The notes: a model not told the origin generated them from the sequence alone. Counted from the stretch's first letter, positions 25,838 to 31,200 are shown. The stretch: 64,000 nucleotides of DNA from Trichosphaerium sp. ATCC 40318 (GCA_038496445.1 JALMLS010000027.1:1-64000), one strand, 5' to 3'. Program-made: numbers and translations.

Positions 25838-26223
25838 TTTTTTTTGTTGTCTTGTTGTTGATTATACTTGTCGTTGTTAATCAGATACTGTCGTATGATT
25901 TATGGTTATTTTAAGATCTGATTCTGAGTGCACAAACTTAACAACTCAAATCCTTTTCATTGAATAGGAAGTAGCGTATTCGTTTTCCATTCCTTTTCCG
26001 TACCTAAAATAATTAACAATAGTACAACGAGGTTGTTATTAATGCAATGATTGAGTGGTGAATCAATTTCTGCAGTACAACGCTCTTTATTGTTCTATTG
26101 TTTCTCTAAGAAAGGCTACAAGGAAAAAAAATGTTAGCAAACGAAGGTTAAGTTCAACATTCAACTCAATATTGAATCAAGTCACTCATTTGGTCTTAAT
26201 AATATAACTGCCGTGGCACGTAG

Positions 26224-28042
26224 ATGGAGCCTTCGACTGACGATTCAATAAAAGCAAATAAAGGGATTAATCACACTCTTGAAGTATTAAGGCTTAGGAG
26301 ACTCATAGTATCCCTTGAAAATGCGTCCGCTGTCGGTAAAAAGCAATTATTATGTAGTGTACTCCTACCGCCAAACGATTCGCTTCAACGTATCAAAAGC
26401 CTTTTAAAAGAGTACAAGGTACTAGTTCCAGGCACAAAATCGGCAAAATCAGTTAGGTAAGCATATCTACAACATACGCTCACAAACATATCTAAATCGC
26501 TTTGCAGTGATAAATCTGTGCGTCACATAATAGATAAAGTGCAATCAATACTCATCCCAATGAAAACGGCACCACCAAACGGATTTGTACGATAAAACAT
26601 CTCACACTTATTTATTACGCGCTTAGACGCGTATTAAATTACTTTTCAGGTAATCTACACAGGATACGTTGAGATGGAATCAGGACGAGAAAAAATGATG
26701 TGTACCTCTTTTGAACCGCTTAGACCACTCCATTGTAGTATGTATTGTGTTGACTCGGTATTCAAAACCGATGGATTGCAAGGCCAATTCACATCAGTAA
26801 GTTGCTATCAAAATTACTCTTTAGTCACGTGATTTTTTTTTGGAGGTGTTGAGTGTTTTAGGCTCGTAAGTATGGTGTCGTAGTTATGGATGGTCATGGT
26901 TGTCTTCTTGCAAAGATGCATGGAGATAAAAAAGAGATATTAAAGACAATAGCAGTGTCATTACCGTCAAAACATAAAAAAGGTGGACAGTCATCACGTA
27001 AGTGTTTTTAAAATGAAGTCTTCAATTTTATGTTTTCGTTAGTCACCTTTTGGGTGCTCAAACCGTTTCAATTAAACCCTTGCACATCTTTACATGCAAG
27101 TAACAAAACGTATTTACCACTAGCAGAATTTGTTCAGGCACGAAACCTGTGCCTGTACACTGACGCAACTTTCACAGAATGACATTGTTTTTTAACACGT
27201 ATTTTTAGAACGCTTTCAGAGGCTACGTGTTGAGAAGAGAAATGTTTACATAAAAAAAGTAACAGAGCTTATGATTCAATGCTATATTGAAAATAATATA
27301 CCTTCTGTTCATGGTATAATCCTTTCAGGATCAGGAAGTCTAAAAAATGAACTTTCAAAGCACTCCACGCTTGATCAAAGACTATCAAAGATTATAGTTA
27401 AGGTACTTGATGTTTCATACGGTGGAGAGAACGGATTAGCACAGACAATGAGTCTATGCGATGATTTATTGGAAGATATTGAGCTGGTTGCTCAAAAAGC
27501 GAGTTTGGCAAAATTTTATAGTGTTGTAAGTCAAGATGATTCATTAGCATGTTATGGTCTTGATACAGTAATGTATGCTGTATCAGAAGGTGCAGTTAAG
27601 ACTCTATATATTGCAGAAGATCTAGACATACATAGAGTTTGTCTAGATGCCAAAGGCGCCACAGAAAGGTTAGTAGTTTGCCAATTGTTTCAAAAAAACT
27701 TGATTTGGTTTTTTTTTTCAATATTTAAGCGCAAGTGATGGAGAACTAATGATGTTTATGTTTAGGATAAAGTACTTGACATTATCACAACAAGAAGACG
27801 ATATAAATCTTCGAGATTCATCAAATGTACAACTTGCAATTCAAGATTCTTCACCGCTCATTGAGTGGCTTATTGATACAAACAGTAAACATGGCATTGA
27901 AGTTATTGTTGTCACTAATCAGAGTGCAGAAGGTGAACAGTTTTGTAAAGGGTTTAGCATTGGTGCTATATTAAAATATAAGGTTCACTTTCCTGAAGAA
28001 AAGGTACTTGGCCTTTCAACATCATTTGAATGGGACATGTAA
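26224..28042 (+). CDS. Divergent eukaryotic release factor 1 (eRF1) paralog
   Basis: PPNGF-VIYTG, FEPLRP, YGVVVMDGHG, LPSKHKKGGQSSQRFQRLR, LDVSYGGENGL, EGEQFCKGFSIGAILKY. TASNIKS and YxCxxxF are degenerate. Confidence 0.9.
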
Positions 28043-28228
28043 AATAAATAAAGTTCAAAAAATACCAAAAAAAAAAACATGCAATAAGACTTTTCAGCAC
28101 GCTCAAAAAAACAAGGAAAACACGAGACAATAACAACGGAAGTTGAATAGAAGGAAATTTGTACATTCTAATTTACAAAAAAAACCAATGACACGCATGC
28201 AAGGCTTCTTTTTTTTTGTTTTTTTTTC

Positions 28229-31200
28229 TTAAAGCCCGCGATAGATTTTACCAACTTGTAAGACAACACATGACGTATGGTCCATAATACCTGGATATAA
28301 TGATTTATCTCTAGGCTCTGCTTTCAATGTTGGGTTTTGTTCCATGTACTCACTAAAGTAAAACAGTCAACAAACGTAAACAATTATTTATTGGTTCCTT
28401 TGAAGGTCTGCTACGTACCGTAAAGCAGTTGTATTCCTCACACAAAAGTCAATAACTGTCCGCGTAACTACACGTGGGGTAATAGGATCATCAAGTTCAT
28501 TAATGAGCTTTGATAGAAAGCTCTGTCTATACCTACAAAATATTGTTAGTTGAAAATCAAACAGACACGTGGGATGGTACCAGTCACGGAATAACCGACC
28601 CTTTTGAGGGTCCATCTTATCCCAAGAAGATAGAGAAGCATCATCCAACTAAATACTAGAGTGAGCTCGATATTTCCACAAAGAAATAATAAAGACAAGT
28701 TAAATACAAAAAAAAGGTTCTTACATTCCGCTTATCACGCTCCATTTGTGTTGAATTAATCAGCCTCTGTACATCCCTTGGAATCAAGCCATTATATTCT
28801 GGATTAAGGTTCTGATGTAGTCCTGCTGATACAACAAGTATCATATCTTCTTCCTATCAAACAATTACTTCACCATGCACGATACCAAATAATAAGATGT
28901 AAGAAAACATACCTCACAAGCACGCTGATATATCTTCATGTTACGCAAATCAGGAGATCCATTATAAACAAAAGGACCAAGAGTACCACCCGCATCACCA
29001 CGGATATGCTCACAATTCCTAGCTGTAATATCTTGAACATGACCTGTCTTTCGATGCCAATGGTAAGCCTTGCAAGTAAAAATAAGCCACAAGTGCATCA
29101 TCAACTAGTACTAAATTACCTTGCAGTCGCCAACACCAATACACATGAAACACCATGCCTTCTCTCTGTTGTCTTCATGACGTCCAACCTTAACTACTTG
29201 TTAGTTCTACAATTTCTGCATTGAACGTCTCTTACCTCAGTTAATAGGCCACCTAAAAAGCTACATGTCCCAGCAGAGAATAAATCAGTTTCTCTTCCAG
29301 CAATAATACCTTCATGAGCAGCAGCAAGACTTTCAACAAGAGATAACCCAACATCTTTGAGATTCCCACAAGAATCTTGATTACGTAGAAGAGCTTCCAA
29401 GAAACGTTTTGTAGCAACATTTGCGACCCTCAATGATCGCATACCATATTTACATCCATCAGCTAACGCTACTGCCATACGATTCTTATAAGCAACAAAA
29501 CGGTATCTAAAAATAAGTCATTGACATTAAATTGACAAGGTGTAAGCGTACTTGTCTGAAATTGGATCGCCAACGAAACCCATTGTCAAATTGCTATTAA
29601 ACATCGTTAGAAAAACGAGCTACAGTGGGTTGTTTAATTGTTTTAACAAGCGTACTTGAAAGGCATTGTAGATACTGTTCTAGCAGCTACAACATCTGTA
29701 AATCTTTCAGCTGTAATATCTTCAGGACCTTCAAACACAATGTAAGTAAATTTTTCTACGACGATTTTTTTTTGTTGGTGTTAAGTACCAGGTCCATCCA
29801 ATCTGATTATATCTTTTCCACCACAAGCAACAAGTCGCACTTGTTCAGAAAAAGGTTTTAGCATATCTTCTAAACTCTTTCCCTTGTTTTGTTTTACAAG
29901 AGCTTCAACAAAAGAGGGTGACCGAATTGATTTTTCTAGAAACAAAGAGGATAGTCAGAGCTAAAGTGTTTCATTCAAACAAAAAAATAGGGTTACCTAG
30001 CCGTCCTATCTTATAAGTGGCTGTAGCACTCTCCATAAATGTTGTTGCTGTACTTGGTACAGACTCACTACCAAGTTCACCTTGGCGGATACGAGGAGAC
30101 TAAAACAAAGTATAAGCACGATGCATCGCACAACAATCATTACAAAGAGTGTCTAACTTACTGCTTGGTACAATACTGTATTAGATCGGGGCTTGCTATC
30201 AGGTCTTCTAGGAGATACGTGATTAGTAGCAAAGCTTCTTGCTTCTTTATCATGGACATCTATAATCTTATGTAAGTCGACAGAACTCTCCAAGGCATAA
30301 AACAAGGTTTTGTACTGTGCTTTGCCAGCCGTTTGGAGTAAGACTGGAGTCCCCGAATAAGTTTATCTATATCTTTAACCCATGATTTACGTTCTTCTAA
30401 CGTAGCAGAGCTAAATACTACTTTGTGACCATGTGAAGTAACTTGAAACCGATTTTGTAAAACTACACAGTCAAAGAAAAAAAAAACATTGCAAGAATTA
30501 AATTAACCATCATTGTAAGGATACACTGTGAATCTAACATTGTCTGGCAATCGCCTCCATAAAGCGAGAGAGAAGTGACGAATGATTTTTCATTAGAAAC
30601 CTCATTGATCTACCAATCATGCGTCAGTAATGTTGCGAATTAAAAAAAGATTATCTTCTGGTCAATGCAAGAAGAAATTTAAATTGAAGCTTCATTGGTT
30701 ACCTCAGCAATTATAATAATGTCACTAAGCAAATATACATAACCTTTCTTTAGTTTTCCTTTATCACTTATCCAATGTAAAGGACCTTCACGGACAAACG
30801 CGCGTAATTCTTTTCCAATCAGATTCTAAACAAAAAACTCGTTACGCAACCATTAAAAAAAAATCTATATTCGTGTCGCTAGAACAAGAGAGAGATAAAT
30901 AAATGGGGTGGAAATTAAAAAAATTACATTGACATCGTCACATGTTTTTGAAATATCTGACAAGTGTCATTGTTTTTTTTTTCTCGTAGTCACATGTACG
31001 GTACGGTACAGTCATTAGAGTGCTAATCCCGATAAATTTTTTTCAAAACAATAAACAGGGTGCACCGCACATGCTCTTGTTCGCGTCCTACGCGCTTAAT
31101 TCGCTGACCTATAAAATATATACATACAGAGCCTGATTGGACAGGTAAATAACGAACCGGAACGTTGCCTTTTAGGGAATTGCTAATTGTAACCAATTTT

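Follow-up and report, generated by a model that had tools for sequence, protein, structure and literature searches.

A transcribed eRF1 paralogue of Trichosphaerium sp. ATCC 40318 with a conserved catalytic body and a rebuilt codon-reading domain

Gene structure and transcription

A gene for a paralogue of the eukaryotic release factor eRF1 occupies positions 26224-28042 on the forward strand of a 64,000-nucleotide (nt) stretch of the Trichosphaerium sp. ATCC 40318 genome (GCA_038496445.1 JALMLS010000027.1:1-64000), hereafter the window. The encoded polypeptide (the window protein) keeps the catalytic body of eRF1, including the GGQ motif, and has a rebuilt stop-codon reader. With high confidence, it is a real, transcribed and constrained eRF1 paralogue of this kind, known only from its host. 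An initial annotation, made from the DNA alone, had placed a GGQ-bearing eRF1 paralogue here, and the limits it gave coincide exactly with the ATG and TAA of the gene, the GGQ falling at residues 194-196. Direct reading of positions 25900-28400, together with a listing of open reading frames (ORFs), yields a joined coding sequence of 1332 nt that specifies 443 amino acids and the TAA in one frame, interrupted by five introns of 51, 63, 65, 211 and 97 nt, all with GT-AG borders. The gene is organized as follows.

26224-28042, forward strand: whole gene, six exons, ATG first and TAA last
26224-26456, forward strand: exon 1, residues 1-77 plus 2 nt; N-domain helix 1, GTS-loop equivalent and start of the NIKS-loop equivalent; RNA contig on 26269-26419
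26457-26507, forward strand: putative intron 1, 51 nt, phase 2, placed by homology and by a stop codon on read-through; no RNA contig crosses it
26508-26586, forward strand: exon 2, residues 78-104, from the gene model and alignment
26587-26649, forward strand: putative intron 2, 63 nt, GT-AG, phase 0
26650-26796, forward strand: exon 3, residues 105-153, beta part of the N domain; Pfam eRF1_1 E 0.06, hhalign and an RNA contig
26797-26861, forward strand: intron 3, 65 nt, spliced in RNA (a contig of run X3 joins 26796 to 26862)
26862-26997, forward strand: exon 4, residues 154-198 plus 1 nt, where the M domain begins; Pfam eRF1_2 E 2.1e-9
26998-27208, forward strand: putative intron 4, 211 nt, GT-AG, phase 1
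27209-27668, forward strand: exon 5, residues 199-352, which completes the M domain and covers the C domain's first half; Pfam eRF1_2 E 2.7e-19, eRF1_3 E 1.4e-8
27669-27765, forward strand: intron 5, 97 nt, spliced in RNA (a contig of run X2, GT..AG after a +2 shift of the cut)
27766-28042, forward strand: exon 6, residues 352-443 plus TAA; C-domain mini-domain, G-A-I-L-K-Y and the F-E-W-D-M tail; Pfam eRF1_3 E 9.2e-9; X1 and X2 RNA contigs
28043-28048, forward strand: AATAAA adjoining the stop codon; by its sequence it may serve as a polyadenylation signal

The gene is transcribed and spliced. A search of public sequencing indexes found three runs, from three studies, that carry parts of it at ≥99% identity. 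Introns 3 and 5 are removed in RNA contigs from two independent runs of different studies, one of them (X3) an RNA-seq metatranscriptome, and further contigs cover exons 1 and 6. Introns 1, 2 and 4 were placed by homology and splice consensus. Two single-base differences occur in the RNA contigs, 26309 T>C (read as Val29Ala) and the synonymous 27904 T>C, which are too few for a test of selection. In base composition and intron style the gene resembles the surrounding host genes.

Domain architecture and codon-recognition motifs

Searches of Pfam, of sequence databases and of the PDB were run on single exons, and the joined 443-residue model was used in local alignment, BLAST, hhalign and tree building. 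Exon by exon, Pfam assigned eRF1_2 and eRF1_3 above their cut-offs on exons 4-6, with eRF1_1 reaching only the E value of 0.06 on exon 3. Exon 5 matched residues 189-339 of human eRF1 in the PDB (E 1e-32), and exon 1 matched the human eRF1 N domain by phmmer (E 0.007) with an insertion of two residues at the GTS position. Local alignment by hhalign of residues 1-152 to an alignment of 30-odd canonical N domains returned a probability of 99.3%, a score of 116 and an E value of 2.6e-20. On these profile matches the N domain, degenerate at its motifs, is clearly still an eRF1 N domain, and the protein is a full-length eRF1 homologue with the three-domain architecture eRF1_1 - eRF1_2 - eRF1_3. Judged by the same comparisons, it belongs by descent to the eRF1 clade and lacks three of the motifs that mark a canonical class I factor (NIKS, GTS and YxCxxxF).

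Three other assignments were considered and rejected. Identity with Pelota/Dom34 is ruled out by the presence of GGQ and by the PDB match of exon 5, which is far stronger for eRF1 (E 1e-32) than for Pelota (E 3e-6). A bacterial aeRF1 (baeRF) or a Vms1-like VLRF1 is likewise ruled out, the only match being baeRF_family10 at E 0.083 and 13.6 bits against a cut-off of 27.1. Nor does the protein belong to a family of NIKS-less eRF1-like proteins typified by P0009 (see below): its N domain scored 34 (E 5e-5) in hhalign against that family, compared with 116 (E 2.6e-20) against canonical N domains, and is 16-23% identical to those of its members.

Conservation was assessed against 44 diverse eRF1s, a column being called near-invariant when at least 90% conserved. 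The window protein keeps 24 of 25 such columns in the M domain, 8 of 10 in the N domain and 6 of 8 in the C domain, which together with the Pfam matches bears out the initial annotation's description of the M and C domains as intact. Overall, 38 of 43 near-invariant columns are kept, as against agreement with the plurality residue at 46 of 176 variable columns (Fisher p 5e-14). Because of this difference the gene is, as far as column-wise conservation can tell, selectively maintained and not drifting neutrally. With spliced RNA contigs at hand as well, the gene is not the unexpressed, neutrally evolving copy whose discovery, according to the initial annotation, would have overturned its proposal.

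The recognition loops of the N domain and the catalytic loop lie at the following positions.

26332-26352, forward strand: GTS-loop equivalent V-G-K-K-Q-L-L, residues 37-43, without Thr or Ser and two residues longer in the alignments
26425-26448, forward strand: TASNIKS equivalent V-P-G-T-K-S-A-K, residues 68-75; N-I-K is unrecoverable, the region is three residues longer and gap placement varies by aligner
26743-26763, forward strand: YxCxxxF equivalent Y-C-V-D-S-V-F, residues 136-142, with Cys replaced by Val
26982-26990, forward strand: codons of GGQ (residues 194-196), within H-K-K-G-G-Q-S-S-Q-R-F-Q-R-L-R

The canonical G-N-G-T-S-M-I-S is replaced by A-V-G-K-K-Q-L-L-C-S, a gain of two residues. 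In place of E-F-G-T-A-S-N-I-K-S-R-V-N-K-L-S-V the protein has E-Y-K-V-L-V-P-G-T-K-S-A-K-S-V-S-D-K-S-V, with three additional residues between Glu55 and the conserved S-V, and none of three alignments (MAFFT, hhalign), which differ in their gaps, restores Asn61-Ile62-Lys63 in register. The change of Y-L-C-D-N-K-F to Y-C-V-D-S-V-F retains Tyr125, Asp128 and Phe131 and substitutes Val for Cys127, at a column 98% conserved in the 44 eRF1s. The alignments thus reproduce the initial annotation's readings of the three motifs as VGKKQLL, VPGTKSAK and YCVDSVF. Its statement that the recognition motifs are lost holds for NIKS, for GTS and for the cysteine of YxCxxxF, and is slightly too strong for the rest, as an alignment is still possible for Lys63 and Ser64, Tyr125, Asp128 and Phe131, and perhaps for Glu55.

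Lys63, Glu55, Cys127 and a cluster of Ile35, Ile62, Val71, Ala74 and Ile75 are known determinants of stop-codon reading (PMC5681627), and Atkinson et al. reported both NIKS and YxCxxxF to be universal among e/aRF1s, the exceptions being NIKS variants of ciliates and YxTxxxF in a few Archaea (PMC2613156). Among the compared proteins with the N domain covered, only a handful, the window protein included, have neither an x-I-K-S-type motif nor the cysteine of YxCxxxF. No cellular eRF1 paralogue that keeps GGQ and has lost both NIKS and the YxCxxxF cysteine was found described in the open-access literature. The idea that the remodelled loops form a basic probe was discarded, the net charge of the N domain being +6 in the window protein and in the canonical copy alike.

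A further feature lies in exon 1, which also encodes the beginning of the NIKS-loop equivalent. After codon 65 (26418/26419) stands a consensus-like donor, A-A-G|G-T-A-C, whose phase fits that of the first codon of exon 3 (26650); its use would skip residues 66-104, the entire NIKS helix-loop, with the frame kept. Such skipping was seen in no RNA contig; one contig ends at 26419 and is compatible with either form.

The retention of the M and C domains beside a rebuilt N domain bears on the proposal that the protein is a regulator or competitor of termination. Such a factor would bind eRF3, the ribosomal A site or both and release poorly, so as to tune termination, readthrough or nonsense-mediated decay, or it would serve as a decoy during infection. 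The domains that bind eRF3 and ABCE1 are well kept, and the C-terminal tail resembles that of the host eRF1. Forms of eRF1 with a mutated NIKS retain binding to ribosomes and to eRF3 and behave as dominant negatives, which speaks for the same proposal. However, a pure competitor has no need of GGQ and its flanks, which are among the best conserved parts of the protein (24 of 25 columns), and we regard this role as unlikely.

Release factor genes of the host and origin of the paralogue

The genome (70 Mb, 642 contigs, with the window at C62:1-64000) was covered by six-frame Pfam scans and by a scan with exon 5, in which the window gene proved to be single copy. The canonical eRF1 that the initial annotation had expected elsewhere in the genome lies on contig C97 near 36 kb (L010:2923-4763). 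It has nine exons, eight introns of 45-116 nt and 438 residues, carries G-T-S, T-A-S-N-I-K-S, Y-L-C-D-N-K-F and GGQ, and ends in E-E-V-W-E-W-D-L followed by TGA. Its N, M and C domains are 72, 69 and 48% identical to those of the canonical eRF1 P0008. The window protein is 34.6% identical to it overall (N 30%, M 45%, C 30%), and its N domain is 30-34% identical to canonical N domains.

A second variant eRF1 lies on contig C124 near 134-135 kb, with A-T-S, C-I-K-S, Y-Y-C-G-S-G-F and GGQ. A 46-nt intron in this gene has GT-AG borders and a branch-like site, CTAAC (G000:C124:134485-134531; L009:3486-3560). Once the intron is removed, C-I-K-S-R-V in the 0 frame is followed by a TAA, and the +1 frame, continuing N-R-Q-S-V, restores the canonical pattern. 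The window gene shares no intron position with either the C97 or the C124 gene. Because the genome holds the canonical eRF1 and this second variant, the window gene is not the sole release factor, and one finding that the initial annotation had said would refute it, that the gene be the only eRF1, is contradicted. A Pelota gene is present on C268, and C147 has a very weak eRF1_3 trace that is too eroded to be related to the window gene. As to stop codons, the window gene and the C124 gene end in TAA, the C97 gene in TGA, and two genes neighbouring the window gene in TAA and TGA.

Codon specificity in the window protein may be altered and not absent, the protein reading a subset of stops, or stops in a particular context, with the work split among the three GGQ-bearing eRF1s of the host. 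Consistent with this, Lys-Ser of NIKS, Tyr, Asp and Phe of YxCxxxF and a Glu beside the Glu55 position can be aligned, and the N domain is 30-34% identical to canonical ones with 8 of the 10 most conserved columns kept. The C124 variant (CIKS, ATS, YYCGSGF, with a frame interrupted by UAA and continued in +1) hints at specialised eRF1 copies in this host. Bacteria divide the stop-codon work between RF1 and RF2. Ciliate eRF1s shift their specificity through the same regions (PMC2613156, PMC5681627). However, the specificity variants known so far retain both I-K and the cysteine of YxCxxxF, the extensions of the NIKS loop by three residues and of the GTS loop by two should disturb the compact U-turn pocket, and the complete set of omnipotent motifs is already present in the C97 copy. 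Altered specificity is a possible but somewhat unlikely account of the gene.

Relatives of the window protein were sought in an exhaustive HMMER search of exon 5 against 1.84 billion protein representatives. It gave 1481 matches, ordinary or otherwise divergent eRF1s, the best at 41-43% identity save for one fragment, and the window protein itself is absent from that library. The exception (P0132, a 54% match) was ruled out as an orthologue; it is a fragment of a canonical eRF1, 70% identical to the C97 protein. A metagenome scan found 541 relatives at no more than 45% identity, the best matches in the metagenome and viral scans lying at 39-45%. One relative on a viral contig was retrieved from IMG/VR, an eRF1 of canonical type that is 53% identical to the C97 protein and 34% to the window protein. 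No orthologue was found in the protein library or in the metagenome or viral scans, and the window protein is an orphan in current data.

The initial annotation had proposed listing all eRF1 copies and building a tree. The genome scans gave the inventory above, and the 46-row tree (LG+C20) is nearly star-like. In it the window protein sits on an end branch of 1.58 substitutions per site and joins KAH3764669.1 of Pelomyxa schiedti (P0057) and P0009, a placement that carries a long-branch warning, and it does not group with the C124 protein. Forcing a clade with the C97 protein costs 6 log-likelihood units and is not rejected (approximately unbiased test, p 0.42). The C-termini offer a further comparison, as the C97 protein ends in W-E-W-D-L and the window protein in F-E-W-D-M, and an E-W-D-(L/M/I/V/F) end occurs in none of 166 other proteins. 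The shared E-W-D-(L/M) tail suggests descent from the host eRF1 or binding to the same partner. An old duplication within the lineage would be the simplest reading of the origin. Three supposed synapomorphies (a Lys before GGQ, G-L for G-F, and Leu for Lys in D-T-G-K) were dropped, since they are scattered across many eRF1s.

The long branch, the lack of an orthologue in these searches and the absence of intron positions in common with the canonical gene would also suit a decaying, functionless duplicate or a recent acquisition from a giant virus, with no role of its own; giant viruses of amoebae do encode eRF1 (PMC3521657, PMC6582330). Such an account is very improbable. All 443 codons stay in one open frame despite the five introns, RNA shows transcription and splicing, and invariant columns are preferentially retained. 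Moreover, the sole relative on a viral contig is of canonical type and closer to the C97 protein, the base composition and intron style are those of the surrounding host genes, and nothing in the IMG/VR scan, the tree or the sequence comparison points to a viral origin.

These searches also brought up further eRF1-like proteins in which the motifs are disturbed. P0009, P0155, P0156, P0157, P0167 and P0158, from marine protist transcriptomes and metagenomes, keep GGQ, have M-Q-N-L-S-R in place of NIKS and read H-L-C-D-A-K-F at YxCxxxF. Their N domains are 55-69% identical among members, so that the family is conserved across several species, and no description of it was found. The window protein (A-V at residues 36-37, 26329-26334) and this family have in common an A-V insertion of two residues that immediately precedes the GTS position, with L-L and V-x-L-P after it, a similarity that may reflect either convergence or a deep shared origin. 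The Pelomyxa schiedti protein lacks NIKS and keeps YxCxxxF. A protein of the mantis shrimp Oratosquilla oratoria (P0143, XP_076039369.1) has N-I-R-S and Y-R-C-D-K-E-P, and P0013, from a Logan contig, is a long fusion of 945 residues with G-G-S at the GGQ position.

Further observations concern possible partners and the surroundings of the gene. At least 17 loci in the genome lie above the cut-off for the eEF1A-type C-terminal domain PF22594 (on C28, C86 (two), C58, C419, C134, C6, C22, C89, C184, C1, C541, C388, C194, C206, C185, C346 and C57), a number well beyond the usual set of EF1A, eRF3 and Hbs1. This looks like an expansion of the EF1-family GTPases, which could include partners of the additional eRF1s; taken by itself, domain III gave PDB matches that do not tell eRF3, Hbs1 and EF1A apart. 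A six-codon upstream ORF (ATG ... TAA) at 26131-26151 lies 73 nt 5' of the start codon, and would count as a uORF if the 5' untranslated region includes it. The ORFs neighbouring the gene have no Pfam match, and there are no tRNA genes in the window.

Proposed function and comparison with known systems

The mechanism we prefer, tentatively and with less than even confidence, is peptide release with a relaxed or absent codon requirement on aberrant ribosomes. The window protein would enter the ribosomal A site with a GTPase of the eRF3/Hbs1 type and hydrolyse peptidyl-tRNA through GGQ. It would no longer read UAA, UAG and UGA in the canonical way, and would act with little or no need for a stop codon on stalled or aberrant ribosomes, as a GGQ-bearing counterpart to Pelota, which is itself unable to release. 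Docking with an eRF3-type GTPase and catalysis are argued from the retention of GGQ, of nearly all invariant M-domain residues, of R-F-x-R-L-R and of the C domain with G-A-I-L-K-Y. Non-canonical stop reading is argued from the rebuilt GTS and NIKS loops and the Cys127Val change. The E-W-D-(L/M) tail common to the window protein and the host eRF1 suggests that they share a partner.

Several observations weigh against this mechanism. A codon-blind GGQ factor is dangerous on elongating ribosomes, and no feature was found that would confine the window protein to stalled ones: it has no Pelota-like loop, and the charge of its N domain equals the canonical value. Depending on gap placement, Lys-Ser can be aligned to Lys63-Ser64 and a Glu on or beside Glu55; with Tyr125, Asp128 and Phe131 also alignable, the protein may still read codons in part, perhaps the U in position 1. 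The RNA support consists of a few low-depth contigs, and the introns it does not cover (1, 2 and 4) lie on either side of the NIKS region and of the exon with GGQ. Finally, the protein, metagenome and viral searches gave no orthologue for a domain-wise ratio of nonsynonymous to synonymous substitution rates (dN/dS).

A stricter form of release without decoding would make the window protein a cytosolic peptidyl-tRNA hydrolase on an eRF1 scaffold that needs no stop codon, the eukaryotic counterpart of ArfB on stalled 80S ribosomes. We consider this specific role rather doubtful. Other protists (the P0009 family and Pelomyxa) appear to have gained similar GGQ-keeping eRF1 copies without a decoder independently. 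The interpretation in the initial annotation is partly supported. The evidence favours a functional eRF1 paralogue in which GGQ persists and the decoding motifs are altered, and the three functions that the annotation put forward, a codon-independent hydrolase, a factor of altered specificity and a regulator or competitor, are not separated from one another by the available sequence analysis.

In the textbook picture, eukaryotes terminate translation with a single omnipotent eRF1 and rely for rescue on Pelota, which lacks GGQ. The free-living protist studied here combines a canonical eRF1 with a recoding-dependent variant and with a third copy in which the catalytic and partner-binding parts are constrained and the codon-reading head is rebuilt. 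Should the window protein release peptides without a stop codon, it would be a eukaryotic ribosome-rescue factor of a new kind; should it read only some of the stops, it would parallel in a eukaryote the way RF1 and RF2 divide their labour. Under either reading it offers a natural experiment on the eRF1 residues needed for decoding. The independent NIKS-less families suggest that the phenomenon is wider than one genome, and codon-independent hydrolysis, should it hold here and in similar copies elsewhere, would be a recurrent solution.

Compared with canonical eRF1 (ETF1/Sup45 and the C97 protein), the window protein has the same length, the N-M-C domain order, GGQ and the C-domain mini-domain, together with the R-F-x-R-L-R, Y-G-G-E-N-G and G-x-I-L-(R/K)-Y segments, at 35% identity overall and 45% in the M domain. 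It differs in its broken NIKS, with the loop three residues longer, in the replacement of GTS, with the loop two residues longer, in Val at Cys127, and in the loss of most of the acidic C-terminal stretch.

Pelota/Dom34 is an A-site factor of the eRF1 family that reads no stop codon, works with an eRF3-like GTPase and ABCE1, lacks GGQ and has an Sm-like N domain. It is the nearest functional analogy for a codon-independent mode of action, with the difference that the window protein possesses GGQ. ArfB/YaeJ and the mitochondrial ICT1, rescue factors of bacterial type derived from class I release factors, have kept GGQ, lost codon reading and release peptides on stalled ribosomes; they have the bacterial RF-PH fold, and a basic C-terminal tail senses the empty mRNA channel. 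The concept is alike, but the fold is unrelated and the window protein has no basic C-terminal sensor tail.

The eRF1 homologues encoded by giant viruses of amoebae (PMC3521657, PMC6582330) and the C124 copy are likewise extra eRF1s with variant motifs beside a canonical host eRF1. Unlike the C124 gene, the window gene has a continuous open frame and no recoding site, and the relative on a viral contig resembles canonical eRF1 more closely than it does the window protein.

The nearest precedent is eRF1-2 of Tetrahymena thermophila, which is about 31% identical to the main copy of that species and whose function is unexplained (PMC2613156). Like the window protein, it is a second, long-branch copy that keeps GGQ and whose origin is obscured by long-branch effects. 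By contrast, it retains YxCxxxF and x-I-K-x, whereas the window protein has neither an in-register I-K nor the cysteine, and the host of the window protein, as far as sampled, uses the standard stop codons.

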